64,000 bases of DNA from Macrostomum lignano (taxonomy: Eukaryota), in the NCBI GenBank assembly GCA_002269645.1, contig NIVC01000628.1, positions 1 through 64,000 on the forward strand. Direction: 5' to 3'. Made by a program: the position numbers and the translations under genes. A model generated the notes under the pieces. It searched no databases and was not told where the DNA came from. It saw only the letters and a program-made list of their open reading frames with translations. Position 1 is the stretch's first letter. Each line of letters opens with the position of its first letter. Of this stretch, positions 1,362-61,912 are shown in pieces.

Positions 1362-4445
<3,084 letters not shown>

Positions 4446-6002: not shown

Positions 6003-35327
<29,325 letters not shown>

Positions 35328-35654
35328 CATGGTTGGAGAGGCCGACTGCCTGGCTCTGCTGTTGTATAGTTTCTGTTTATTTGCTTTTCCATATTAGTGC
35401 GATTGACAGGTGTCTGCTTGAGCCGCTCAGGAGGGGCAGGGGGCTCGGCTAATGCTGGCCCGCGACCCCTGCAATTATTGTGGCAGCTGCTTGTCCGCGC
35501 GAATCTGCCGCTTCTAGTGGATTTTTGATGCGGCGCGAACTTTTTTCTGTTCTGTTTTTCTCCTTACCGTATTCTTCTTCTGCGAATGCAATGCCGAACA
35601 TGCAAGGTTTGCTTTTTGTGCTTGACTTTTGCTTGTTTTGTACTCTGGTTAGAC

Positions 35655-36372
35655 ACAATGATGCGGTCCAGCTATCTGTGTCCTTGAATGAACACAATGA
35701 TGCGGTCCAGCTATCTGTGTCCTTGAATGAACACAATGATGCGGTCCAGCTATCTGTGTCCTTGAATGAACACAATGATGCGGTCCAGCTATCTGTGTCC
35801 TTGAATGAACACAATGATGCGGTCCAGCTATCTGTGTCCTTGAATGAACACAATGATGCGGTCCAGCTATCTGTGTCCTTGAATGAACACATGATGCGGT
35901 CCAGCTATCTGTGTCCTTGAATGAACACAATGATGCGGTCCAGCTATTTGTGTCCTTGAATGAACACAATGATGCGGTCCAGATATATGTGTCCTTGAAT
36001 GAACACAATGATGCGGTCCAGCTATCTGTGTCCTTGAATGAACACAATGATGCGGTCCAGCTATCTGTGTCCTTGAATGAACACAATGATGCGGTCCAGC
36101 TATCTGTGTCCTTGAATGAACACAATGATGCGGTCCAGCTATCTGTGTCCTTGAATGAACACAATGATGCGGTCCAGCTATCTGTGTCCTTGAATGAACA
36201 CAATGATGCGGTCCAGCTATCTGTGTCCTTGAATGAACACAATGATGCGGTCCAGCTATCTGTGTCCTTGAATGAACACAATGATGCGGTCCAGCTATCT
36301 GTGTCCTTGAATGAACACAATGATGCGGTCCAGCTATCTGTGTCCTTGAATGAACACAATGATGCGGTCCAG
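35655..36372. repeat. 39-bp minisatellite (CACAATGATGCGGTCCAGCTATCTGTGTCCTTGAATGAA)n
   Basis: About 18 near-identical copies downstream of the CASK stop. Confidence 0.96.
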
Positions 36373-36749
36373 TTCTTGAACATTGTGCTAACCTGTGATC
36401 GAATTGCATAAAGGCTTGACAGATGTCCTCTACGCAATTTATATGGAGCCTCGGGGAAAAATTTTGGCATTAAAGAAGTTCGTATTGATTAGCAGTAAAT
36501 TTGAAGCTTAATTATTATCTAAGTTAGGATGAGTTCAATCGATCACGTACTCCTTCTTTGATGTCAGCAACTCCCTCATCTGTACGCGCCCAGGCCTTTA
36601 CTTGTTGTTAATTTTAGTCTATTTTTACCTTCTGGCCATCAAAATTAGACAACCGAGCTGCCTCATATTGGAATTTCGACGCGTGCGTGCAAGTTTTGGA
36701 ATTCATCTATAAGTATGTCATAGTAGTGCAGGGCTCGGTAACATTTTAT

Positions 36750-37978
36750 GAGATCTTATCTCATCTATCTCAGATCTTATCTCATCTATCTCAGATCTTA
36801 TCTCATCTGTCTCAGATCTTATCTCATCTATCTCAGATCTTATCTCATCTGTCTCAGATCTTATCTCATCTATCTCAGATCTTATCTCATCTATCTCAGA
36901 TCTTATCTCGTCTGTCTCAGATCTTATCTCATCTATCTCAGATCTTATCTCATCTATCTCAGATCTTATCTCGTCTGTCTCAGATCTTATCTCATCTATC
37001 TCAGATCTTATCTCATCTATCTCAGATCTTATCTCATCTATCTCAGATCTTATCTCGTCTGTCTCAGATCTTATCTCATCTATCTCAGATCTTATCTCAT
37101 CTGTCTCAGATCTTATCTCATCTATCTCAGATCTTATCTCGTCTGTCTCAGATCTTATCTCATCTATCTCAGATCTTATCTCATCTGTCTCAGATCTTAT
37201 CTCATCTATCTCAGATCTTATCTCATCTGTCTCAGATCTTATCTCATCTATCTCAGATCTTATCTCATCTATCTCGGATTCTTATCTCATCTATCTCAGA
37301 TCTTATCTCATCTATCTCAGATCTTATATCATCTATCTCGGATTCTTATGTCATCTATCTCAGATCTTATCTCATCTATCTCAGATCTTATCTCATCTAT
37401 CTCAGATCTTATCTCATCTATCTCAGATCTTATCTCATCTATCTCAGATCTTATCTCATCTATCTCAGATCTTATCTCGTCTGTCTCAGATCTTATCTCA
37501 TCTATCTCAGATCTTATCTCATCTATCTCAGATCTTATCTCATCTATCAAGATCTTATCTCATCTATCTCGGATTCTTATGTCATCTATCTCAGATCTTA
37601 TCTCATCTATCAAGATCTTATCTCATCTATCTCGGATTCTTATGTCATCTATCTCAGATCTTATCTCATCTGTCTCAGATCTTATCTTATCTATCTCAGA
37701 TTCTTTTGTCATCTATCTCAGATCTTATCTCATCTATCTCAGATCTTATCTCATCTATCTCAGATCTTATCTCATCTATCTCAGATCTTATCTCATCTAT
37801 CAAGATCTTATCTCATCTATCTCGGATTATTATGTCATCTATCTCTGATCTTATCTCATCTATCTTAGATCTTATCTCATCTCTCTCAGATTGTATCGCA
37901 TCTATCTCGGATTCTTATCTCGTGTATCTCAGATATAATCTCATGTATCTCAGATTTGAAGATGAGATAAGATCTCAT
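36750..37978. repeat. 21-bp minisatellite (TCAGATCTTATCTCATCTATC)n
   Basis: Read directly; explains ORFs 36687-37868. Confidence 0.96.
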
Positions 37979-38699
37979 TCGTACCGAATTTCAGCTCGGT
38001 CTCGGGTTCCATCTCGAATCTCTGTCTCTCTGTTTTCAGTTTTTTCTTTCACTTCCCGACTTTTCCTGCCGCGGAAGCTCTCTTATAATCAACTACCAGC
38101 TGTCTCTTCTTCATCGCCCAGCATCTTAAGAGCCGTAGCTTGTCCGCAGCCCACTCAGCCTCTGTCCGCGGTCTGTCATCAAGCAGAATTATTCAATTTT
38201 TCCTTCTTTTCCTTCCTAACCGAGCTCTGCTCCCATCGGTTCTGTTTTGATCCCCCGTTTTGCGTCATAAATATCTCGGCTTCCTCTCGGGTTGCTGACA
38301 GCCGGGCGGGTCACGCTATTCTATCGAACTCGTACAACCTATCGTCAGCTTTGATTACCTTAGCTGCCTGTCCGAATACACTGCTGTAATTATTGATTAT
38401 GAAGCGCTGAACAAACTAATGCATCATGACTGACTTGCTTCTGTACATAGCCTGCTGACATAACATTGTTTGTGTTGTTAAAAGTTCGTTCTTAGAAATG
38501 CCAGAATCTAAATATATGTTTTAATGCATATTTGACGGTTTAGTTAAGGCATGGATGAGACCTCCTCAGCTACTCCGAAATTGTTCACTGATCAGTTGGT
38601 TTATTGTGTTGCCTTCCACTGCTTCGAAGTTTCACATCGTCGGGAAGTTTTGAGAAAAGTATTTTTTTTGTACAAAACTTCATGGTGGCGTGAAGCTTC

Positions 38700-40225
38700 T
38701 GGTTTGTGAAGATTCGAGCTTGTGAAGACTAGAGCTTGTGAATATTCGAGCTTGTGAGGATTCGAGCTTGTGAAGATTCGAGCTTGTGAAGATTCAAGCT
38801 TGAGACGACTCGAGCTTGTGAAGATTCGAGCTTGTGAAGATTCGAGCTTGTGAAGATTCGAGCTTGTGGAGCTTCGGGTTTGTGAAGATTCGAGCTTGTG
38901 AAGCTTCGGGTTTGTGAAGATTCGAGCTTGTGAAGCTTCGGGTTTGTGAAGATTCAAGCTTGTGAAGATTCGGGTTTGTGAAAATTCGAGCTTGTGAGAA
39001 AATTCAAGTTTGTGACAATTCGAGCTTGTGAAGATTCGAGCTTGTGAAGATTCGAGCTTGTGAAGATTCGAGCTTGTGAAGATTCGAGCTTGTGAAGATT
39101 CGAGCTTGTGAAGCTTCGGGTTTGTGAAGATTCGAGCTTGTGAGGATTCGAGCTTGAGACGACTCGAGCTTGTGAAGATTCGGGTTTGTGACAATTCGAG
39201 CTTGTAAAGATTCGAGCTTGTGAAGCTTCGGGTTTGTGAAGATTCGAGCTTGTGAAGCTTCGGGTTTGTGAAGATTCGAGCTTGTGAAGCTTCGAGTTTG
39301 TGAAAATTCGAGCTTGTGAAGATTCGGGTTTGTGACAATTCGAGCTTGTAAAGATTCGAGCTTGTGAAGCTTCGGGTTTGTGAAGATTCGAGCTTGTGAA
39401 GCTTCGGGTTTGTGAAGATTCGAGCTTGTGAAGCTTCGGGTTTGTGAAGATTCGAGCTTGTGAAGCTTCGGGTTTGTGAAAATTCGAGCTTGAAGATTCG
39501 AGCTTGTGAAGATTCGAGCTTGTGAAGCTTCAGGTTTGTGAAGATTCGAGCTTGTGAAGATTCGAGCTTGTGAAGCTTCAGGTTTGTGAAGATTCGAGCT
39601 TGTGAAGATTCGAGCTTGTGAAGATTCGAGCTTGTGAAGATTCGAGCTTGTGAAGCTTCAGGTTTGTGAAGATTCGAGCTTGTGAAGAAAATTCAAGTTT
39701 GTGACAACTCGAGCTTGTGAAGATTCGAGCTTGTGAAGATTCGAGCTTGTGAAGATTCGAGCTTGTGAGGATTCGAGCTTGAGACGACTCGAGCTTGTGA
39801 AGATTCGAGCTTGTGAATATTCGAGCTTGTAAAGATTCGAGCTTGTGAGGATTCGAGCTTGAGACGACTCGAGCTTGTGAAGATTCGAGCTTGTGAATAT
39901 TCGAGCTTGTGAAGATTCGAGCTTGTGAAGCTTCAGGTTTGTGAAGATTCGAGCTTGTGAAGCTTCGGGTTTGTGAAGATTCGAGCTTGTGAAGATTCGG
40001 GTTTGTGACAATTCGAGCTTGTAAAGATTCGAGCTTGTGAAGATTCGAGCTTGTGAAGATTCGAGCTTGAGACGACTCGAGCTTGTGAAGATTCGAGCTT
40101 GTGAAGCTTCGGGTTTGTGAAGATTCGAGCTTGTGAAGCTTCGGGTTTGTGAAGATTCGAGCTTGTGAGGATTCAAGCTTGTGAAGATTCGGGTTTGTGA
40201 AAATCAGAGCTTGAGAAGCGTCCCC
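38700..40225 (-). repeat. 16-bp minisatellite (GAAGATTCGAGCTTGT)n, reverse complement of the 14620-15008 family
   Basis: About 94 copies with variants; ends in GAAGCGTCCCC. Confidence 0.95.
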
Positions 40226-41362: not shown

Positions 41363-42628
41363 CTAGCGCCGTCCGCATGTCAGAATCCGGCGGAACGCCT
41401 GTCTGAAGTCCTTGTTGAACACCGTGTAGATGACCGGGTTCAGAGCGCTGTTGCAGTAGCCCAGCCAGAAGAAGAAGTCGAATAGGATCAGCGGCACGCA
41501 GCCGCAGAAAATGTCCGTCAGGTAGGTGGTGAAGAAGGGGAACCAGCAGAGCACGAAGGCGCCCATGATGAGGCCCAGGACGAGGGTTGCCCGGCGCTCC
41601 CGGGCTCGCGCCAGTCGGCGCTTCTGCCGCAACGCCGCCTCGGCTGCCGACATGGCCTTCGGGGCTGCAGACTGCGCCGCTTCCACCGCAGCGGTCTCGC
41701 CCGAGTCCATCAGCTGCTCGTCGGGTTCGACATCCGGTTCGACATCCGGTTCACCATCCATTTCGACATCCGATCGAGCTCCGTCCTCGACGGCGTCGGC
41801 GTTGGAGGCGCGCTGTTGAAGCCGCCTAACAGAGCGTCGCAACGCTTCGACATTTCGCTGCGTCGATGTCGCCGCCGCCGCGGCTGCCGTCGCTGACGTC
41901 GACAACGGCTGAGGCGGGCAGCGCCGGCGGGCGTGGCGTCTGGCGGTGCGGAAGATCCTGGCGTACACGAACAGCATGATGAGCATGGGGATGTAGAAGC
42001 TGCCCATGCTGCTGTACATCACGTAGCCGATGTCTGTGGTCAGTTCGCACCTGTCCGGCCGGGCCTGCGGCTTCCGCCAGCCCAGCAGCGGCGGCAGGCA
42101 GATGGCGGCGGACAGCAGCCAGACGACGCCAATCATCCCGGCGGCCCGCCGCGGCGTCCTCCTCCGCGGGTACGTGAGCGCCTTGGAGACGCTCCAGTAG
42201 CGGTCTAGGCTGATGAGGCACAGGTTCATGATGCTGGCCGTGCACGCTAGGACGTCGATGGCCAGCCATAGCTCGCACCAACGGACGCCGAACACCCAGG
42301 CGCCCAGCAGCTGCTTGACCAGGGAGAACGGCATCACCAGCAGGCCCAGCAGGAGGTCAGCGAAGGCCAACGACGCCAGGAACCAGTTCTGCACACTGGA
42401 AACCTTGCGGTCGCGTGCAATGGCCGCGATCACCAGCAGGTTGCCGAGGACCACCAGCGTCCAGATGATTAGCACCGCCAGGATGATTGCGGCGGCCGCG
42501 ACCGGCGGGTACTGCAGCTGGACTAAGGCGAGGAGCTCGTCTTCTCCGAGGGCTGCGGAGGCGGTGACGCCGCTAGAGTTCGAGGCCAGCGGGCTGGCCT
42601 GCCGCTGCGACTGCTGGTGCGGTGACAT
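41363..42628 (-). CDS. Biogenic amine GPCR, alpha2-adrenergic/alpha2-like octopamine receptor type, intronless, 421 aa
   Basis: Seven hydrophobic segments with GNLLV, QNWFLASLAFADLLLGLLVMPFSL, IDVLACTAS (D3.32), LDRYWSV, ICLPPLLGW, YSSMGSFYIP (TM5 serines), CWFPFF, FFWLGYCNSALNPVIYTVFNKDFRQAF. Confidence 0.93.
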   Translation of the reverse strand: MSPHQQSQRQASPLASNSSGVTASAALGEDELLALVQLQYPPVAAAAIILAVLIIWTLVVLGNLLVIAAIARDRKVSSVQNWFLASLAFADLLLGLLVMPFSLVKQLLGAWVFGVRWCELWLAIDVLACTASIMNLCLISLDRYWSVSKALTYPRRRTPRRAAGMIGVVWLLSAAICLPPLLGWRKPQARPDRCELTTDIGYVMYSSMGSFYIPMLIMLFVYARIFRTARRHARRRCPPQPLSTSATAAAAAATSTQRNVEALRRSVRRLQQRASNADAVEDGARSDVEMDGEPDVEPDVEPDEQLMDSGETAAVEAAQSAAPKAMSAAEAALRQKRRLARARERRATLVLGLIMGAFVLCWFPFFTTYLTDIFCGCVPLILFDFFFWLGYCNSALNPVIYTVFNKDFRQAFRRILTCGRR

Positions 42629-42990: not shown

Positions 42991-43389
42991 CCAGAATGGG
43001 AACTGAAGCATATCTAGCATTCCCACATTTTCAAAAGCAGCCGGCGAGAATTCGGTGCGACAAGGGCTGCAGGCCGGGTCAACTTTAATTCGCTAAATAA
43101 CAGCTGGGTCGGAAGTGGATCTTTTTGGCATTTCAAGGCTCCCACGCTTTGCTGAAAATCACCGTTGGGATCCGCTTCGCCCCACCCCTCCCCCACAGCC
43201 AAATGCCCTTTACCCTTCCTGGCAACCAACTCCCTAAAGAGTTCTTAATGGCTTTGGATTGCGCAGCCTCCCCCGCTTTTGCCTTCATTGGCAGCGGTGC
43301 TTTTGGCATCCCGCTTTTCCACCGAAACCCGCTCTGGAATGCAAACAGCTGCTTGTGGTTGCGGCAGATTCCAACTGTAGGTCCTGGGC

Positions 43390-44550
<1,161 letters not shown>

Positions 44551-45348
44551 AATCCATCAATGTAGCTATCTATTCAGCTCCTTTAAATAGGGACAAGCGC
44601 AGCCGAGACAATGGACCAGCCTATTCGGGACAGCAGTGCAGCAGTATTCTGTGATGAATAGCGGAGGCCCTGGCCATTTTCAAGCAACCCGCAGTTTTGC
44701 GCTGGTCGCCGGGCGTTGCCAGATTCATAATTGAAAGGGAAGCCTCCTAAATCCGGAACCTTCGAGACCTGCCCGGATGGATGAAGCCGCTTTTTAAATA
44801 ACTGAGACCGAATTCCACTGTGTTGTGTCCGAACGGGTTAACAGAAATCGCTGCTTTTTATTTTGAAGCCGTTCCACTTTGCCGAGCCACCTTGCAATTC
44901 CAGCTCATGCTAGCAGAATTTGGAATCAATAAATTCAGAAATCTACAAATTTTGATTTTTTGCCACTATAATGCCACATTTTTAAAACTAAAATTGCATT
45001 TTTTTAATCAACAAGTCTGTTCAGGTGCGACATTGCCGCACTCCTGTCCCATCTGTGCCAAGCTGCGGCATGCATTTCCTGCCTGCCTGCCTGCCTGTCT
45101 GTCTGTCTGGCTAGGCGTCCCGCAATTAAGAAGTGGTAGCCCCCGGCCCCCGAGACTCCACTGCTGCATATGGGTTTCCACACGGTCTCTGGCTCGGATT
45201 AAGAGGCTCCTTGAGAGGCAGAGGAATCGATTCAATTCTACTCGAATTGGCCGTATGGAATATGGGATATGTGAATTTTTTACACTGGACCGCATCGTTG
45301 TGTTCAATTTAGCCTGAGCATTTTCCTGCAATGGAGTCCCCAGCCTCG

Positions 45349-51855: not shown

Positions 51856-54309
51856 TCAATGCAGTTGGAATCTCGGATAGGCCAGGTTCAGCGCGGCCGT
51901 TGCCGCCTCCTCCTCCAAGTCCTGCAGCTCGCCCCGGCGATGCAGCTGAAGTTCGCTGCCACCACCGCTGCCCCCCAGCAGGTGGCCTCCAATCTCACGG
52001 CCTGGCAGCAGCAGCAGGTCCTGCAGAGAGCGCCGGCCGCTGCTGCCTCGGCCCGGCGGTCGGGCGGTCCCGTAGCTCGAGTCCATGGCCGCCGCCGCTG
52101 CAGCAGCCGCAGCCGCCGCGGCCAGAAGCAGCGGGCTGGGCAGCGACAGCTCGCGATTGCCCAGGCGGGCGATAATCCTGGCCCGGCGGACCCGTTCGAA
52201 GTGCTTCGTCTTGTAGGCCTCGTAGAAGCCGTTGCCAGAGCAGCTCGGCGAATCTTCGTTGTTGGCAAAGTTTCGTCGAAGCAGCACCCGCCAGACGGAG
52301 CTGTCGCGGTGCAGCTCGGCCAGGAGCCGGCAGGTTTGGCCCAGCCGGCAGACCTCGACGCAGCTGTCGCAGCGGCGCATGATTTGCAGCAGCAGCTCGG
52401 GCGGCAGGCAGACGAGGCTGGGCTGGGGAGGCGGTCGGCCGTTCAGCTCGAACAGAGCCGTCCTGGCGGGCAGGGCGATCTGCGTTTGCGGAAAAGTGAC
52501 GACTCTTGTCCATGCACCGAAGATGGATGAGGCTTAGTCTAGGAAAATCGAAAAATCATCTCACAACTAGCGGGTGCTGCAATTCTACCCATTTCGCTGA
52601 CTTTGTGCTTCTGGCCCTCACGGTTGGATGAACAACCCTGACCAATATTTGTGCGCCAGCCCCAAATTAATGAATTGAACCAGTCCGATGAAAACGGTAC
52701 CTAGGTCAAGAAGCGTCCCAGAGTAACTTGAGTCTCCCCAGAGTCGTTTCAGAGTCGTTGCAGGTAACACAGGTAAAATAGAAAAGAAGTGACTCTAGAC
52801 GACTCTAAAACGTCAAGATGTCACGGTACAGGTTGCGAAAAAGTCGTCTAAGGCGTTTTTTTTATTTGAGGCATTTTATTCTGCGACTTTGAGACGACTC
52901 TGGGGCGACGCAAGCTTCCATAATGACTTAGGGGTCGTAGAGTCGTATTTGAGGCGTGCTTAAAGTCGCTGTAAATTTAGGCCTAAAGCGTATATGCATT
53001 AGAATCGCATTTCGCATTTACAACAGCTCTATTTAGTCTACTTAAGTTAGTAGTTCAAAGTTAAGCGCCAACACAACTACTCTGGGACGACTTTTTCGCG
53101 ACTCTTACGATTCTGCAACTCGCGTGACGCGCACGTGACTCAACAGTCGCTTCTCCGTTGCAAGTGAGTTGTTCACAATGACTCACTAGCGATTCTTGTC
53201 ACGGGAACGTTTTCAACGGGCAGGGGTCGTGGCGGGAGAGTCAAGTGCTACAGCCGCTGAGCTTCACTGCTCCTAAAGGCGAGTTCACATTACCGCCGGT
53301 AGCTTCGCGGCCCAAAAATTACTCAAATGAATTCTAAAATGGGTCTGAACCAACTGCTACATTGGTTTGAACAATCTCTTTGACCCCGCGGAGCTACTGG
53401 TGGTAATTTAAACCGGCCTTAATGCGTCCAAACACCTAGCTTAGCTCGTTATGTTTCCGGGTTTCGTGCATAAATAGAGCGCGACTACTGTAAGTAGTAT
53501 TTTGAAAAGTTCTTCGGGTACTTTTAGTACTTCCGACTTAAATTACATCGCGCTTGTAACTTTTTCTTCCAAAGCTCAGATCTACTTACTATTAGCAGAT
53601 GTAACAAGGGCTTTTTGTAAATATTGTCGGTACAGTCAATTGACTTGAAACTCACCCCATCCTTGAACTTCATGCTCAACTCCCGCTGGTTCAACAGTCG
53701 AACACTGGCCGAGGCCGGGTCGCTGCCAAAGTACCTGGCCAGGACGAGGTGCTGGGATGCATAGGCTGACGCTGGCAGGTTGTCAGCCGGTGCAACGCCG
53801 CAGTGACAGCCGACTTGTCCGCCTTCGTTCAGCAGCTTCAGCAGTGCGTAGCCTTCAAGTTGGTCAGCAGGGCGATGCCGGTAAGAGTAGCGGAGCGCCA
53901 CCGAGACGGCGGGCTGGCAGCCGAGCTGTCGGAGCTGCTGGACCACCGACGACGGCAAGTCAAAGTGGGTCAGCCTTGCGGACTCATTCTGATCGGCTCC
54001 TGAATAACTTGCGCCTGCCAGTTGCGGGGTCACCCGCAGTGCGTCTAGTTCCGTCTTTATTATCGATTGGTCATCCGGATTGTCTTCGAAGTCCGGCTGC
54101 GACCGCTGTTCAGCTTCTTCGGTCTCTGCGTCCTCGCCCGCGGCTGTAAATCCGCACTCCGCCATCAGGCAGTGCAGGGTGAGCAGCAGCCAGTGAAACT
54201 GACTCTCCGGGCGGAGGTCTGCTACCAGGCGACTCAGCGATGGACAAAGTTGGCCATCTTCTGTGCAGATTTCCGACACCTCCTGGGGGAGTTGGTGCGA
54301 CCTCGCCAT
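51856..54309 (-). CDS. F-box protein, FBXO7/nutcracker-like (FP/PI31-like domain + F-box), about 425 aa
   Basis: Exons 54309-53656 (ATG in ACAATGG context; HWLLLTLHCLMAECGF ... LSMKFKDG, donor GTGAGT) and 52479-51856 (CAG acceptor; IALPARTALFELNG..SLVCLPPELLLQIMRRC...LGQTCRLL...DSSVWRVL). The join FKDG|IALP parallels FBXO7 FKDQLVYP. Start codon is uncertain. Confidence 0.75.
53277..53419. mobile_element. PIF/Harbinger (Tourist)-type MITE in the F-box gene intron
   Basis: TAA target duplication at 53274-53276 and 53420-53422; termini AGGC...GCCT; inverted ATTACCGCCGGTAGCTTCGCGG / CCGCGGAGCTACTGGTGGTAAT (19/22). Confidence 0.75.
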
Positions 54310-54544
54310 TGTGCTGCATGCAGCCAGGCAACAGACTGTGCACTGCGCCAAATAGGCCAGTGTAATTTCCAAACCAATATCTACAAAGTCACTGTTACTC
54401 ATTTTAGAAGTTCACTTTCTCCATAGACAAAAGACTCGCCACTTCTCTTCCTCGAAACCAGCTGTTAGAGATCGTAGAGGAAGTAATCGAGTTGCAACCT
54501 TTTATTTGGGAAGTGACAAAAATAGCATACCTCATTGAATCACC

Positions 54545-55180
54545 AGTGACTGAAGCCCACCCCGTGACTGAAGCCCACCCGTGACTGCAGCCCACCCGTG
54601 ACTGAAGCCCACCCGTGACTGAAGCCCACCCGTGACTGTAGCCCACCCGTGACTGAAGCCCACCCGTGACTGAAGCCCACCCGTGACTGCAGCCCACCCG
54701 TGACTGCAGCCCACCCGTGACTGCAGCTCACCCGTGACTGCAGCCCACCCGTGACTGCAGCCCACCCGTGACTGTAGCCCATCCTTGACTGAAGCTCACC
54801 CGTGACTGCAGCTCACCCGTGACTGCAGCCTACCAGTGACTGAAGCCCACCCGTGACTAAAGCCCACCCGTGACTGTAGCCCACCCGTGACTGTAGCCCA
54901 CCCGTGACTGAAGCCCACCCGTGACTGCAGCACACCCGTGACTAAAGCCCACCCGTGACTGCAGCCCACACGTGACTGCAGCCTACCAGTGACTGAAGCC
55001 CACCCGTGACTAAAGCCCACCCGTGACTGTAGCCCACCCGTGACTGCAGCCCACCCGTGACTGCAGCCCACACGTGACTGCAGCCCACCCGTGACTGAAG
55101 CCCACCCGTGACTAAAGCCCACCCGTGACTGTAGCCCACCCGTGACTGTAGCCCACCCGTGACTGAAGCCTACCCGTGAC
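54545..55180. repeat. 17-bp minisatellite (GTGACTGCAGCCCACCC)n
   Basis: About 37 copies between the divergent F-box and AChBP-like genes. Confidence 0.95.
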
Positions 55181-55924
55181 GGTGTGTTGAAACTCATTTT
55201 AATTATTTGTTTCAACATAAAAGATTGAAATAACTTTTATTTAATTTTATTAAATCGCTCCAGAATTTACATTTTAGATAAAAATATACCCAGATCTGTA
55301 AAATTAGCTAACTCAGGACAAAGAATTTCCTGATCCCATTTTTGAGTGCTCTTTGTTGACCAAATGCTTGGACTGTGAGCTCTCAGTTATTGATTTGTGG
55401 AGCAAAAAGAGCGAATTTAGCATTTTTGTTGGTTCATTTTCACAGCTGAAGGTCATAGGCTTAGATAATAACTAGAAATGTGCACTGGAATTCATAAGGC
55501 CGCGAGTTTTCTATCAGATTCTGAAACTTCTAAACACAAATTAAAACACAAAGTTTTCAGCCATCAATGCCTAAAACAGCAAATCTAAGCAGGTGATGCT
55601 GATTTACCTGCAGTCATGCAAGTGGTCAGAACAAGCCCTTAACCGTAAAATCTGGTGATAAACAATAAGTTGATTGACAGCAGCTGCGGTCCCTGGACTG
55701 ATTAAAATCTTAGAAATCTTAAATAAGTCGCTCAAAGCCGAAATTCGGTAAATAAACTGGAAAATTCCAACATGAAAAGCTGGCGAAGCCGTTCTCTAGC
55801 GATGGTGATATTCTGTGACACCTGGGAGGTCCGGTTTGTTTACATCAGACGTGCATAAATGCGAGCCTGTTTTACAGGCAAGAAACTCAGCATCATTCTC
55901 GACTGCTAAAATCAAAAGTAGGTC

Positions 55925-58211
55925 ATGAAGAATTCTCTTGCCCTCCTGCTGCTGCTGGCCGCGTCCACCTGTCTGGTGCAAGGTGATCTAACTTAAATGT
56001 TTTCGTAACTATTTTATGCTTCTGAGCAATTTGAATTCAAACTTCATTGTTGCCTTGTCATGCCATCGCTTTAGGCCAATCCGATGAAGACAGACTTGCG
56101 AGCTACCTGCTGAGGCGGTTGGGCAAAACCGGCTCCATCGCTCGGCCTATCGCTCCCGGCAACGGAAGCCAGACGGTGGACTTGTCTCTGGGCCTGTCTC
56201 TGCTGCGAGTGGCGTCACTGAAGGAATCGTCTGCTGAGATGGACGTGTGGATCCAGATGGTGAGAGAATTCTCTTCACACTCGAGCGTAGGTGGGGGGCC
56301 CAGGACGATTGGAGGTTTCGTGTGAAGGGGTTGCTGACGGAGAAACCGGGACACAGAGGTGTCCGCAGCGCGGTCCCCCTCCGGAGAGTCCAGGAGATGG
56401 ATGGTTGCTCGCCCGGTAGCCCTTCGGTAGCGGACGAGCTGGCAGAGATTCTCGGGCCTGAAAACGTCGGAGACTCTCTTATTCTCAATCGCCACTCCGC
56501 AGTTCTGGAAGGACCCGAGACTCAGCTGGGACCCGGCCGAATTCGGTGGTCTGAGCCAGATCGCCCTGCCCTCCAATCTGCTGTGGATTCCGGATGTTCG
56601 ACCTTTCCATGCGTAAGTGTCTCGTGACAGGCTTCTAAGATAAAGCTTCCATCTGCCCGCTCTGCTCCATCATTACAAGTATTCCCTCCGCCACCCGACC
56701 ACCTCAGCGGGAACTACATACCGGACCGGGTCTCCCCAGTCCGAGTGGTCGCCATGAGCAGCTCTGACGTCATCTACGTACTGCCGGCCAGGCTGCGGGC
56801 TCCCTGCGACCGTCTGCGAAACAAGTCGATGAGCTGCCGCCCGGTGCTGGGCAGCTGGGTGTACAGCGGCCTCTTGCTGAACACGACGCTGAGCTCCAGC
56901 CCCTTCAATATGGCCGATTTTGAGCCTCTGGCCGGTTGGGACGTGGCCAGAGCCACCGCCAGGAGGGTCGAAACCTACTACGATTGCTGCCCAGAGCCCT
57001 ACATCTCCATCAACTACAGCCTTGTGTGAGTAAACCCTACATCTCCATCAACTACAGCCTCGTGTGAGTAAACCCTACATCTCCATCAACTATACAGCCT
57101 TGTGTGAGTAAACCCTACATCTCCATCAACTATACAGCCTTGTGTGAGTAAACCCTACATCTCCATCAACTATACAGCCTTGTGTGAGTAAACCCTACAT
57201 CTCCATCAACTATACAGCCTTGTGTGAGTAAACCCTACATCTCCATCAACTATACAGCCTCGTGTGAGTAAACCCTACATCTCCATCAACTACAGCCTCG
57301 TGTGAGTAAACCCTACATCTCCATCAACTACAGCCTCGTGTGAGTAAACCCTACATCTCCATCAACTACAGCCTCGTGTGAGTAAACCCTACATCTCCAT
57401 CAACTATACAGCCTTGTGTGAGTAAACCCTACATCTCCATCAACTACAGCCTCGTGTGAGTAAACCCTACATCTCCATCAACTATACAGCCTTGTGTGAG
57501 TAAACCCTACATCTCCATCAACTATACAGCCTTGTGTGAGTAGACCCTACATCTCCATCAACTATACAGCCTTGTGTGAGTAGACCCTACATCTTCATCA
57601 ACTAAACAGCCTTGTGTGAGTAGACCCTACATCTCCATCAACTATACAGCCTTGTGTGAGTAAACCCTGCATCTCCATCAACTACAGCCTTGTGTGAGTA
57701 AACCCTACATCTCCATCAACTACAGCCTTGTGTGAGTAAACCCTACATCTCCATCAACTATACAGCCTTGTGTGAGTAAACTGACAGACGAATACTCCAG
57801 AATGCCACATAGTTCTTAATTCTTTAGCAGAAAAAAGCATCTATTCACAGAATGTGCATTGTAGTCTACTGCTTGGGCGAAGATAAAGAGTAGGCAATTA
57901 GCGAATTTTCACGCCACGGTCGCAAGTTTACAATGCGCCTAATTACGATCGTGGCCAACGTATTTATGCACTTGAATCCTGGCTTCAATGCATTTTAAAC
58001 TTTGCTAATTGCCTACTCTTAATCTTCACTAAAAGAGTAGGTTATAACACATTTAACGCAATATTTTGTGCATTTTGTAAGGAAACTCGAATTGGTGTCT
58101 TGTCGGTGAACCATGCTGCCCCCCGCAAATATTCACAGGCTCGACAAGAAGCGCAAGGGCAAGGATGGCAAGGGCAAGGGCAGGCCTCGCGGAGAAGAAG
58201 ATGATGACTGA
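55925..58211 (+). CDS. Secreted acetylcholine-binding-protein-like protein (nAChR alpha-type ligand-binding domain, no TM region), 247 aa precursor
   Basis: Exons 55925-55982, 56075-56259, 56503-56612, 56708-57025, 58139-58211, all GT-AG with matching phases. Signal peptide MKNSLALLLLLAASTCLVQG; EDRL helix; VWIQM|FWKDPRLSWDP; LWIPDV; C-x9-C; GSWVYSG; YYDCCPEPY; ends INYSLV|LDKKRKGKDGKGKGRPRGEEDDD*. AATAAA at 58243. Confidence 0.85.
56995..57780 (+). repeat. 38/40-bp tandem array of the AChBP-like exon 4 end plus its GTGAGT donor
   Basis: Unit CCCTACATCTCCATCAAC(TA)TACAGCCTTGT|GTGAGTAAA; 20 GTGAGT copies counted between 57026 and 57777. Confidence 0.96.
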
Positions 58212-58242
58212 TGAATCTCGAAGACTGCCAAACTTTGATCTC

Positions 58243-58248
58243 AATAAA
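58243..58248 (+). promoter_or_regulatory. Likely polyadenylation signal of the AChBP-like gene
   Basis: AATAAA 32 nt after the TGA at 58211. Confidence 0.55.
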
Positions 58249-58504
58249 CGTCTCAAGCTAACAATATTAAACAATCGGAGATTTTCTTGAAAAAACAAAT
58301 CGCAATGCCACCAAATAGATTAAGATGTCTTGAAACTGCACAACTACGAGCTTCCAATTACTCCAGACCCGACTCCAAGTCTCAAGTGGTACTTTTGTAC
58401 TTTAGCGCATATGTCGCTTACCCCATAAGTTTGATCAGATGTCAAGACTTTTTAAACTAAATAAATTCTCCAAAATTTCTGAATAAATTGTCAACACTAC
58501 AATA

Positions 58505-58792
58505 CAAGAATAATAATACTTGTAATTGACTACACCTTTCCTAATGGGCAGATGTGCAACCGACAGCTTCTGAAGGCTGCGTACGGCTGTTCAGTCCAAG
58601 GACTGGGGGGTCGTCACACACACCCCCAATTACCTCAGCTAATGCTGGCACCCATTTTATAGCTGGGTGAACTGAAGCAATGCAGAGTTAAGTGTCTTGC
58701 TCAGGGACACAAATTGTTCCCAGTGGATCGAGAATCGTACCCCCGACCTTTCAGTCGTGAGTCCGACGCTCTGATCACTAGGCTACTGCAAC
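58505..58792 (-). mobile_element. tRNA-derived SINE, copy 2
   Basis: Closely similar to 47273-47583 over most of its length (CTGAAGGCTGCGTACGGCTGTTCAGTCCAAGGACTGGGGGGTC... shared); same orientation. Confidence 0.85.
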
Positions 58793-59965
58793 CCACCCCT
58801 AGGCTACAACACTGCATGCTATAAACGTCAAATCCAATTATCAGTAGCTTTTTTTAACAAAAAAGATTTAAAAAGATGTCCAGAGCCTTTGTTAGGTAGA
58901 CAGTAGTATAGCTAACTTTTTACTTGCAAATATGTGAAAAACGCAAATAAGACGAACTAGCTAAAATTGTGACTGCGCCGCGCCAATGCAGCTTCCAAAC
59001 TGTCCTGTGCGCTTAAATAAGTTTTGTCAGTGGGGCAGAGCGCGCAACCGTATTGTCGAAGAATTGTGCGATAATAAGGATTGCACTGTTGCGGCCCAGC
59101 AGTCCAACGCATTTGGTGCCGCATCTGTGTGTCGCAATGGGCTGCTTCAATGAGCAAAGAGAGCTAATCAATAACTTCAGTCGATAGTCAGAATTCTAGG
59201 AAACGATAGTCAGAAGGGGCAGAAATCGAGACTGGACTCACATTATGTACAAGGAAATTTGTAAGCAATGGACCAAGAACCAGTTGGGGTCAGTCACAAT
59301 CTTCGGCAGATGCTTCTATTGAAAACATGCGAATTGAATAGCAACATTGTGCTGCAGCGGGAGCAAAGCGCGGGACGGTGCAGGAGAGGCTGCTTGTGTA
59401 CCGATTAGAAAGCTGGCGATGCGCTCAGCATACTGCTACAAGTAGCTAAGGCAGTAAGACTGACCGATTTAATAAGCATTTTATGCGCACAGTTTTAAAA
59501 ACCTTTGCAGAAGGTGTTTTACAAAGTCGAAAGATTAAATGATCGCTAGGGAGAAGGGAGAGCTTTGGTCAGTTAAATAAACCAAAACATGAAGGCGAAA
59601 TCAGCATTGGGTTTGCAGCTTATCAAGTGCAGGCAGGTTTGCAAACTTCAGCGGTTCTTTGGTAATTCGGGAGGCGCTGAAGCAGACAGTTACAGATCAG
59701 GCTTGGTCTGACTGCAGTTGTCTCTCAGCGCCTGCAGGACCTCCGGGTCTCTCATTGCGCTGTCAAACGAACGGTTTTGATGAGGACTCGCGCACAGGCA
59801 AGGCGCCTCTCGGAGCAGTAGCTCAAATGTGTGCGCCATCAGAGCCCGGAAAACTCCCAAGAAGACGCTCTACTAGGAGCTAACGGGTGAAGAACACCGG
59901 AAGTCCTACTACTACTACTAATATACATGTAAATGGTCAACAACAGCGCAGAGTTGGTCGGAGGG

Positions 59966-60749
59966 TCAGTGACGCGACATGTCCACAGCCATGTCTTCTT
60001 CCTCGTCGATGTCCTCCATGTCTCCGGCCTGACAGCAGCCGGTGGTGGAGTCCTCTCTGGCCGGTGAGGTACGGCCCAGCGGGCTGCCCAGCTGGCTGCC
60101 CTGGTCTTCGGCAGTCTCGCCGGAACTGCCGGCCACCTTGATGCCAAGACTCTTGGGTATCTTGGCCAGTATGTGCACTCCGGCGCCGAAACTTTTGAAC
60201 CAGGCGCCGCCCTGCTCCCAGGCGGTGTCCACGGACAGATAGAACGGGTGATAGGGCTGTCGGCATTCGATGGGTCTCAGGTTTGTGTAAATCTGCAAGT
60301 TTATTTGTTACAATATCTGGAGATGTGGCACAATAGTAGAGAAGTGAAACATGATTCACTGACTTAAGCTCATAACTGACTGCTCATAAATCACCGTGTG
60401 CTCATTAGGGACTGTGCTCATAAGGGACTGTGCTCATAAGGGACTGTGCTCGTAAGGGACTGTGATGATAAGGGACTGTGCTCATAAGGGACTGTGCTCA
60501 TAAGGGACTGTGCTTACTGCTTACCTTGAACACCTCGAGTGCGTCGATGGGCAGCTCACTGTAGGAGTTTGAGGCCGGCAGGTAGTACCGCCTCTCATCA
60601 GCGCCCGGACACTGGCTGAACTGCAGGAACTCGGAGCCGTCAATATTAGTCAACACCTGGAACTGGCCCCAGGTGAGCGACTTGTGCCGACTGGTGCCAC
60701 GGACGCAGAAGTGAACTCGATTGAAGAACCACAGCGTGTTGAGTAGAGC
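59966..60749 (-). CDS. DUF3504 (Crypton tyrosine-recombinase-derived, KIAA1958/ZMYM/QRICH1-like) protein, 3' part
   Basis: Exons 60749-60525 (TAG acceptor, GTAAGC donor; ALLNTLWFFNRVHFCVRGTSRHKSLTWGQFQVLTNIDGSEFLQF...DALEVFK) and 60292-59966 (IYTNLRP...PFYL...WFKSFGAGVHILAKIPKSLG...*). Both phase 0. Upstream exons not identified. Confidence 0.75.
60407..60513. repeat. 16-bp repeat (GGGACTGTGCTCATAA)n in the DUF3504 gene intron
   Basis: About 6.5 copies. Confidence 0.9.
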
Positions 60750-60984: not shown

Positions 60985-61912
60985 TCTCCGAAACTTCATT
61001 TCTCCGGAACTTCATATCTCCGAAACTTCATATCTCCGAAACTTCATATCTCCGAAACTTCATATCTCCGAAACTTCATATCTCCGAAACTTCATATCTC
61101 CGAAACTTCATAGCTCCGAAACTTCATATCTCCGAAACTTCATTTCTCCGGAACTTCATATCTCCGAAACTTCATATCTCCGAAACTTCATATCTCCGAA
61201 ACTTCATATCTCCGAAACTTCATATCTCCGAAACTTCATATCTCCGAAACTTCATAGCTCCGAAACTTCATATCTCCGAAACTTCATATCTCCGAAACTT
61301 CATATCTCCGAAACTTCATATCTCCGAAACTTCATATCTCCGAAACTTCATATCTCCGGAACTTCATATCTCCGGAACTTCATATCTCCGAAACTTCATT
61401 TCTCCGAAACTTCATATCTCCGAAACTTCATATCTCCGAAACTTCATATCTCCGAAACTTCATATCTCCGAAACTTCATATCTCCGAAACTTCATATCTC
61501 CGAAACTTCATATCTCCGGAACTTCATATCTCCGAAACTTCATTTCTCCGGAACTTCATATCTCCGAAACTTCATATCTCCGAAACTTCATATCTCTGAA
61601 ACTTCATATCTCCGAAACTTCATGTCCCCAAAAACTTCATATCTCTGTAACTTCATATCTCCGAAACTTCATATCCCTGAAACTTCATATCTCCGGAACT
61701 TCATATCTCCGGAACTTCATATCTCCGGAACTTCATATCTCTGAAACTTCATATCTCCGAAACTTCATATCTCTGAAACTTCATATCTCCGAAACTTCAT
61801 ATCTCCGGAACTTCATATCTCTGAACCTTCATATCTCCAATAAGCCTAACCCCAACGGAGATATGAAGTTTTGGGGTTGGGAAAAAGGCTGCTATTTCGG
61901 AGATATGAAACC
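60985..61912. repeat. 16-bp minisatellite (CTCCGAAACTTCATAT)n with inverted copies at the right end
   Basis: About 53 copies to ~61838, then CCTAACCCC and two reverse-complement units (61854-61872, 61897-61912). Explains ORF 60915-61928. Confidence 0.94.

Follow-up and report, generated by a model that had tools for sequence, protein, structure and literature searches.

In structural pharmacology, acetylcholine-binding proteins (AChBPs) serve as the classic soluble substitutes for the ligand-binding domain (LBD) of nicotinic acetylcholine receptors (nAChRs), and those of snails are thought to modulate cholinergic transmission. Reports of them were confined to molluscs and a single annelid until a putative spider protein was added to the list (PMC4569296). 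Here we describe a locus of the flatworm Macrostomum lignano, lying in a stretch of 64,000 nt (hereinafter the window: positions 1 to 64,000 of the forward strand of contig NIVC01000628.1, GenBank assembly GCA_002269645.1), where a five-exon gene between 55925 and 58211 codes for an nAChR-type LBD without the transmembrane (TM) segments M1-M4 that form the channel of a receptor subunit. On the evidence set out below, we consider it likely that this is an expressed gene for a secreted AChBP-like protein consisting of the ligand-binding domain only.

Gene structure, product and fold

An initial annotation, made from the nucleotide letters, had proposed five exons running from an ATG at 55925 to a TGA at 58211. 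We located the junctions in the sequence 55500-60500 and found GT-AG borders on all five exons, which together give a coding sequence of 744 nt and a protein of 247 aa that begins with MKNSLALLLLLAASTCLVQG followed by QSDED… and ends with …YYDCCPEPYISINYSLV followed by LDKKRKGKDGKGKGRPRGEEDDD and the stop. The features of the gene and its 3′ surroundings are as follows:

55925-55982, forward strand: exon 1, 58 nt, with the ATG at 55925, encoding the predicted signal peptide MKNSLALLLLLAASTCLVQ followed by G; the next intron is in phase 1
56075-56259, forward strand: exon 2, 185 nt, with the N-terminal helix, beta1-beta2 and loop D (…MDVWIQM, W78), ending in phase 0
56503-56612, forward strand: exon 3, 110 nt, FWKDPRLSWDPAEFGGLSQIALPSNLLWIPDVRPFHA, with loop A F116, ending in phase 2 (tblastn match 56506-56613)
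56708-57025, forward strand: exon 4, 318 nt, with loop E, the Cys-loop and loops B, F and C, through …INYSLV
57026, forward strand: exon 4 donor, GTGAGT, phase 2
57026-58138, forward strand: intron 4, 1113 nt, phase 2, at V224, precisely the end of the LBD and the position of M1 in a receptor
56997-57781, forward strand: minisatellite of intron 4, made up of 20 units, each 38-40 nt long, of which only the first is exonic
58139-58211, forward strand: exon 5, 73 nt, encoding the charged tail (V)LDKKRKGKDGKGKGRPRGEEDDD and the TGA stop, ending at 58211
58243-58248, forward strand: AATAAA polyadenylation signal, 32 nt past the stop; an ATTAAA is next at 58266
59966-60298, reverse strand: last exon of a convergent gene, about 1.75 kb past the stop, without a Pfam match

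By comparison with vertebrate nAChR gene structures, the end of exon 2 would be the old nAChR '45|110' intron position, and exon 3 appears to be the old 110-nt exon kept from nAChR genes.

The conceptual product is 100% identical to the M. lignano entries PAA75741.1 and PAA79548.1 of GenBank (each a "hypothetical protein"); this identity supports the junction from 57025 to 58139 and turns the flatworm host, on which the initial annotation had made its proposal conditional, into a certainty. Additional M. lignano copies share 96-98% identity (PAA56211.1, PAA85864.1, UniProt A0A1I8I0E5 and UniParc UPI0007A30767), and the reading frame is intact in all copies. No fewer than three loci preserve it, and so do relatives with 67% and 47% identity. 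One of the further copies lies at the paralogous locus L004 (NIVC01000302.1, 10001-10057), where the start of the 269-aa model PAA85864.1 is placed 19 codons ahead of the ATG seen in the other copies (MRACFTGKKFNIIFDQKKV-) and is probably mis-called; L004 is a second genomic site and no allele of the window locus, because its neighbours differ (Tom7, Med20 and an AAA ATPase). The suggestion that the lineage is undescribed holds for the literature and not for the databases: we found no paper on a flatworm AChBP, nor any in the searchable full-text literature tying AChBP to Macrostomum, flatworms, planarians or schistosome proteins, and the locus tags Mlig018664 and Mlig011179 are not found in searchable full text; the gene model itself already stands in GenBank and UniProt as hypothetical or "Neur_chan_LBD domain-containing". 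What is new, then, is an AChBP-like protein in a new phylum, and what was known before is the predicted gene model.

The product contains a complete nicotinic-type LBD, with a similarity far above chance. The Pfam profile PF02931 (Neur_chan_LBD) is matched over positions 16-214 of its 216 with 88 bits (E 7.6e-25; cut-off 26 bits), and the top sequence matches among solved structures are the Aplysia AChBP ("soluble acetylcholine receptor") and chimeras of AChBP with alpha7 or alpha1 (E 5e-27 to 1e-23), in an alignment that spans residues 22-231 and passes through the natural C-terminus of AChBP; full-length alpha7, alpha1 and beta2 rank next. The AlphaFold model, a single-chain prediction from an eight-sequence alignment (predicted local distance difference test [pLDDT] 79.3, predicted template-modelling score 0.73), has an N-terminal helix, a beta-sandwich and a disordered tail, and in Foldseek it matches the extracellular domains of alpha7, alpha1 and alpha9 as well as AChBP chimeras (E ~1e-18 to 1e-19; target-normalised template-modelling score 0.79-0.85 for entries comprising the extracellular domain only). 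Together with the vicinal cysteine pair of loop C, these matches bear out the complete alpha-type extracellular domain of the initial annotation. Its putative signal peptide likewise fits sequence rules: the N-terminus has a charged n-region, a hydrophobic core of 15 residues and the small-residue cleavage motif V-Q-G before Q21, the peak Kyte-Doolittle window of the whole protein sits in this exon 1 segment, and AlphaFold models a helix there (residues 2-19). At the other end, the hydrophilic tail LDKKRKGKDGKGKGRPRGEEDDD is present as described, with its stop and the AATAAA at 58243; its 23 residues include nine K/R, seven D/E and five G, and are predicted to be disordered (pLDDT <50 for residues 231-247).

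We mapped the binding pocket by alignment with the Aplysia AChBP and two receptors. The three motifs singled out initially, GSWVYSG (loop B), YYDCCPEPY (loop C) and VWIQMFW (loop D), all occur in the translation and place W168 in loop B (the heptapeptide being the same as in the Aplysia AChBP), Y209, C211-C212 and Y216 in loop C, and W78 in loop D; loop A is represented by F116, where the canonical residue is Tyr. Four of the five aromatic-box residues are thus canonical, as is the vicinal cysteine pair, and the fifth change is conservative. To judge from these residues, the pocket is of the alpha type and seems able to accept a quaternary-ammonium ligand. There are only four cysteines in the mature protein (C151, C161, C211 and C212), along with four N-glycosylation sequons (N49, N156, N176 and N220), and its Cys-loop is C151-x9-C161 (CDRLRNKSMSC), without an FPFD-type motif.

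Absence of a channel, and related proteins

Past the signal peptide, no 19-residue Kyte-Doolittle window of the protein exceeds 1.13 (threshold 1.6), and the M1-M4 segments of a full-length nAChR subunit are absent from it. In tblastn searches of the 64-kb window with two full-length receptors, only the LBD exons were matched. We also ran tblastn with the TM domains of 26 receptors, and a locally built TM-domain hidden Markov model on six-frame open reading frame (ORF) pieces, over the window and the paralogous M. lignano loci L003 and L004, each extended by 10 kb on its flanks, and obtained nothing better than E 0.05-0.6; these weak matches are repeats or a G-protein-coupled receptor (GPCR). 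In a spike-in control, 35-aa pieces of canonical TM domains were recovered (E 1e-11 to 1e-2) and pieces of two very divergent short receptors (P0014 and P0019) were missed; the negative search alone is therefore not absolute. Unless such very divergent domains escaped the search, the stretch from the stop to the convergent gene at 59966 is free of M1-M4, as had been proposed, and so is the rest of the window. If intron 4 is retained, the frame meets a TGA immediately (…SLV*), and read-through therefore cannot reach a channel domain. At L003, too, a convergent gene follows downstream, annotated as a 754-aa product and without Pfam matches.

Two related proteins are encoded on intron-less contigs with transcript features. 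P0002 (252 aa, 67% identical to the window protein) is found on contigs of 1050 nt (SRR28338165) and 916 nt (SRR28338164), which have a 5′ untranslated region (UTR), a stop after …RRGDDQDDD and a 3′ UTR of ~180 nt; P0010 (236 aa, 47% identical) is found on a 906-nt contig (SRR28338166) with a stop and 3′ UTR at the matching place. Both proteins stop, as the window protein does, at the end of the LBD, and their contigs align gaplessly across all four junction positions. Since the ORF runs uninterrupted across the four intron sites of M. lignano, we regard these contigs as mRNA-derived. The runs with related RNA contigs are SRR28338164, SRR28338165 and SRR28338166 (adjacent numbers), SRR31412048 and SRR19644540. 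P0002 keeps all pocket residues, cysteines and sequons of the window protein, and the tail pattern, i.e., K-R at a fixed position, a basic stretch and an acidic D-D-D end, is kept both in the M. lignano paralogs and in P0002 (…KRKGDKRRGDDQDDD*). In P0010, both cysteines of the Cys-loop (…LPTDRLRNESRLGY…) and the aromatic residue of loop A are gone, and the vicinal cysteines of loop C are kept; as read from its contig, the protein is a Cys-loop-family domain without the Cys-loop.

For a wider comparison, we ran an exhaustive HMMER search of 1.84 billion representatives, which returned 3115 matches. After the flatworm proteins, the best per-domain matches are mostly proteins of 220-260 aa without a TM segment, including oyster XP_062617358, abalone XP_067655201, the sea-slug "soluble acetylcholine binding protein" ABI96921, a freshwater mussel protein and a protein of the annelid Owenia. 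Identity to these next relatives beyond the flatworm clade is at most 36-37%; a search with a profile of the flatworm alignment recovered the clade itself, then an unnamed 227-aa protein and then the Aplysia AChBP (26% identity). Three TM-bearing proteins that had seemed to be close relatives (Strigamia T1JBH7, Clunio CRK86397 and Mesorhabditis CAJ0574943) were set aside: they are gene models of 857-1215 aa with two to five tandem receptor units, whose search rank is inflated by scores summed over several domains, and in each of them an array of neighbouring Cys-loop receptor genes seems to have been annotated as one.

We then compared the Cys-loop across 134 aligned domains, among them 49 from TM-bearing and 64 from LBD-only relatives. 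In the TM-bearing set, the spacing is C-x13-C in 45 of the 48 having both Cys-loop cysteines, and the motif [FYW]P[FYWH]D is present in 42 of 49; in the LBD-only set, the spacing ranges from x8 to x23 and the motif is present in 2 of 64. The window protein, with C-x9-C and no such motif, has neither of these two marks of a full-length receptor. With class profiles built separately from the LBD-only and TM-bearing sets, the flatworm proteins being left out, the four flatworm proteins score 20-27 bits higher on the LBD-only than on the TM-bearing profile. In leave-one-out controls, the corresponding difference is +13.5 ± 13.8 bits for LBD-only proteins and −25.3 ± 13.4 bits for TM-bearing ones (maximum +4.6), and with the Cys-loop masked the LBD-only margin is still about +15 bits.

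These observations bear on a different account of the locus, namely that an ordinary nicotinic subunit gene is seen here in its 5′ half, with M1-M4 exons that lie past the convergent gene or outside the window, the 247-aa form being only a minor or artefactual isoform. An intron precisely at the LBD/M1 boundary, a window that ends 5.8 kb past the stop and a TM search of limited power for very divergent domains would all accord with it; yet the orthologous cDNA-type contigs have their stop and 3′ UTR at the matching position, the tail exon is conserved and constrained, the AATAAA lies 32 nt past the stop with the convergent gene after it, no TM match occurs within 10 kb downstream in the two paralogous loci, and the Cys-loop is without the coupling motif of 42 of the 49 channel-bearing relatives. 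We accordingly regard this account as very improbable.

The gene is under purifying selection. The ratio of nonsynonymous to synonymous substitution rates (dN/dS, Nei-Gojobori) is 0.21 against the P0002 cDNA, at a dS of ~1.2, and 0.29-0.32 for the window or L003 copy against L004, on ~20 substitutions; between the window and L003 copies it is 0.66, on only 9 substitutions. These values, together with the frame being intact in all copies, argue against a decaying remnant. A transcribed but functionless receptor pseudogene that has lost its 3′ half could draw on the window-L003 ratio and on the copy-variable intron minisatellite, which duplicates an exon end and its donor, but would have to contend with a frame preserved in at least three loci and in the relatives at 67% and 47% identity, with dN/dS of 0.21-0.32 in the larger comparisons, and with structural cysteines and pocket residues that are all kept in M. 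lignano and P0002; we find it scarcely credible.

Origin of the gene and its surroundings

The gene would likely have originated from a gene for a nicotinic subunit, whose M1-M4 exons gave way to a new, short terminal exon at the domain-boundary intron. The initial annotation had left a choice between an AChBP lineage and an independent loss of the TM domain, and had proposed a tree of nAChR subunits and AChBPs. In a neighbour-joining distance tree of the 134 domains with 200 bootstraps, the flatworm clade is recovered at 0.99-1.0 and its attachment at no more than 0.09, the point tree putting the clade among the LBD-only proteins; the tree thus yields the clade and leaves its placement without support.

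Gene structures offer a second comparison. The LBD-only genes of Haliotis and Saccostrea have four coding exons and, in common with the M. lignano gene, an intron after …LYN/G, following the 110-nt exon. Both mollusc genes have an intron ahead of the "45-nt" segment, where M. lignano has none, and lack the intron after …IQM that M. lignano has; in both, a large last exon extends as far as the stop, and the domain end, where M. lignano has an intron, is uninterrupted. Presumably, the flatworm and mollusc genes keep different subsets of the ancestral nAChR intron set. The separate tail exon, which has no counterpart in the two mollusc genes, is a hint that the truncation was a different event, by terminal exon capture. 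With class profiles that favour the LBD-only set and a 3′ gene structure that differs, common descent with the mollusc and annelid AChBPs is neither supported nor excluded. A tentative scenario, which we hold to be possible and rather less than probable, is an independent flatworm invention of a soluble acetylcholine trap, in which a 73-nt terminal exon was captured at the domain-boundary intron, M1-M4 were lost, and the charged tail serves to anchor the pentamer or to process it. On this scenario, nicotinic decoys without a channel would be convergent in at least two spiralian lineages, and the short, motif-less Cys-loop shared with the mollusc AChBPs would be a convergent relaxation.

Each unit of the minisatellite at the boundary intron repeats the 29 nt with which exon 4 ends, followed by the donor GTGAGTAAA, giving 20 GTGAGTA sites in the window; the array is also present in L003 (~11070-11420, 9 donor sites) and L004 (~11130-12360, 33 donor sites), so that the copy number differs between paralogous loci. 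Were a later donor of the array used, the in-frame TGA would stay in the mRNA, and the protein would therefore end in …SLV*, without the tail, or the transcript would become a target of nonsense-mediated decay. Intron 4 further contains an inverted repeat (57859-57909 and 57997-58047; 51 nt, 78% complementary, 87 nt apart) with a perfect 17-nt palindromic pair at its core (AAGAGTAGGCAATTAGC/GCTAATTGCCTACTCTT), which may be a small foldback or an insertion resembling a miniature inverted-repeat transposable element.

Elsewhere, the window carries the following genes:

41363-42628, reverse strand: single-exon rhodopsin-family GPCR of 421 aa (Pfam 7tm_1, E 4e-74)
~20731-34666, forward strand: exons of a CASK/MAGUK-like gene, with guanylate-kinase exons at 32056-32568 and 34331-34666 (Pfam E 2e-30)

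The best solved structures for the GPCR are the alpha2A-adrenergic and 5-HT1A receptors (E ~1e-88 to 1e-85), by which it is predicted to be an aminergic receptor of the octopamine/tyramine/serotonin type; this alpha2-adrenergic/5-HT1A-like affinity ruled out a muscarinic receptor, which would have hinted at a cholinergic gene cluster. In the CASK/MAGUK-like gene, the end of a protein-kinase domain at ~21100-21519 is a weak match under the Pfam cut-off. Two reverse-strand ORFs upstream of the AChBP-like gene (53524-54402 and 51856-52380) have no Pfam match. Minisatellite arrays crowd the window (among others, 1655-2880, 3785-4203, 7696-8502, 12700-13590, 25400-27270, 32600-33750, 35450-36470, 36690-38390, 38600-40180, 43125-44654, 54541-55180 and 60985-61838) and make long spurious ORFs in several frames, so that ORF length is no guide to genes here.

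Function and comparison with described systems

By analogy with the mollusc and annelid AChBPs, the flatworm protein is probably a pentameric ligand trap. The subunit would be secreted and N-glycosylated at its four sequons, five subunits would form a ring, the five interface pockets would bind acetylcholine or a similar cationic ligand, and the ring would buffer cholinergic signals or nicotinic toxins or be a decoy for them, ligand sequestration being all that is possible for a protein without a pore. More speculatively, the disordered, basic-then-acidic tail may tether the protein to the extracellular matrix or be clipped by a convertase at the conserved K-R site.

Several points weigh against an expressed gene for a secreted, AChBP-like trap. 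Secretion, pentamer, ligand and physiology are all carried over from the mollusc and annelid proteins; the transcript-type evidence comes from the contigs of relatives; the dS against P0002 (~1.2) is saturated, and the comparisons between paralogs rest on ~10-20 substitutions; and the TM search would overlook very divergent TM domains split over small exons, such as those of which pieces escaped the spike-in. In addition, loop A has Phe for Tyr in the window protein and Ile in P0010, which is without both Cys-loop cysteines and hence the disulfide, and the ligand of the clade may therefore not be acetylcholine. This last point leads to a channel-less LBD protein with a non-cholinergic ligand or job, be it the binding of another amine or small molecule, or a structural, immune or secretory role of the kind reported for some hemolymph homologues of AChBP in molluscs. 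The isolation of the clade, with its next relatives at most 36-37% identical, is compatible with such a role, the physiological roles of AChBPs are called unclear in the description of the spider protein (PMC4569296), and the Biomphalaria AChBP is a 60-mer of the hemolymph (PMC3423370); set against these are the four canonical aromatic-box residues and vicinal cysteines, the conservative nature of the fifth change and the loop B shared with the Aplysia AChBP, and on balance we judge a non-cholinergic role unlikely.

If the locus is, as we favour, an expressed AChBP-like gene, the molluscs and annelids are joined by a third spiralian phylum, with a conserved family in a free-living flatworm, and the question of a single or repeated origin of nicotinic domains without a channel can be put to a concrete test. 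Molluscs, annelids and environmental transcriptomes contain many LBD-only relatives, so that one more is not very surprising. In situ hybridisation, RNAi and transgenesis are established in M. lignano as a laboratory model, and the role of the decoy in vivo is thus genetically testable.

Among the described systems, the alpha7, alpha9 and alpha1 subunits of nAChRs have in common with the flatworm protein the fold, the vicinal cysteines of loop C and the tryptophans of loops B and D; unlike it, the alpha subunits have M1-M4, the C-x13-C spacing and the FPFD coupling motif, all three of which the flatworm protein lacks. The putative AChBP of the spider Cupiennius salei (CsAChBP, PMC4569296) is, like the flatworm protein, a complete LBD-only protein from outside the molluscs and annelids with an atypical Cys-loop length, in its case derived from a transcriptome; by its published description, it differs in coming from an ecdysozoan and in a Cys-loop of 16 residues, as against 9. 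In annelids, the LBD-only protein CAH1796943 of Owenia fusiformis is among the top matches, and the AChBP of Capitella teleta is, like the flatworm protein, a channel-less LBD from a non-mollusc spiralian; the relation to these annelid proteins is distant, with no supported grouping in the tree, and binding data exist for Capitella (cited in PMC4569296), where the flatworm protein is known from its sequence. The mollusc AChBPs (Lymnaea, Aplysia, Bulinus and Pleurobranchaea ABI96921) differ in a Cys-loop of x12, compared with x9 in the flatworm protein, in having Tyr in place of Phe in loop A, and in the absence of a 23-aa basic/acidic tail on its own exon; the overall identity to the Aplysia AChBP is only 26%, with GSWVYSG identical in loop B. 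With these proteins the flatworm protein shares a predicted signal peptide and an LBD of ~210 residues without M1-M4, and, like them, it stops a few residues past beta10, has vicinal cysteines in loop C and a variable, hydrophilic Cys-loop that is free of the FPFD motif.

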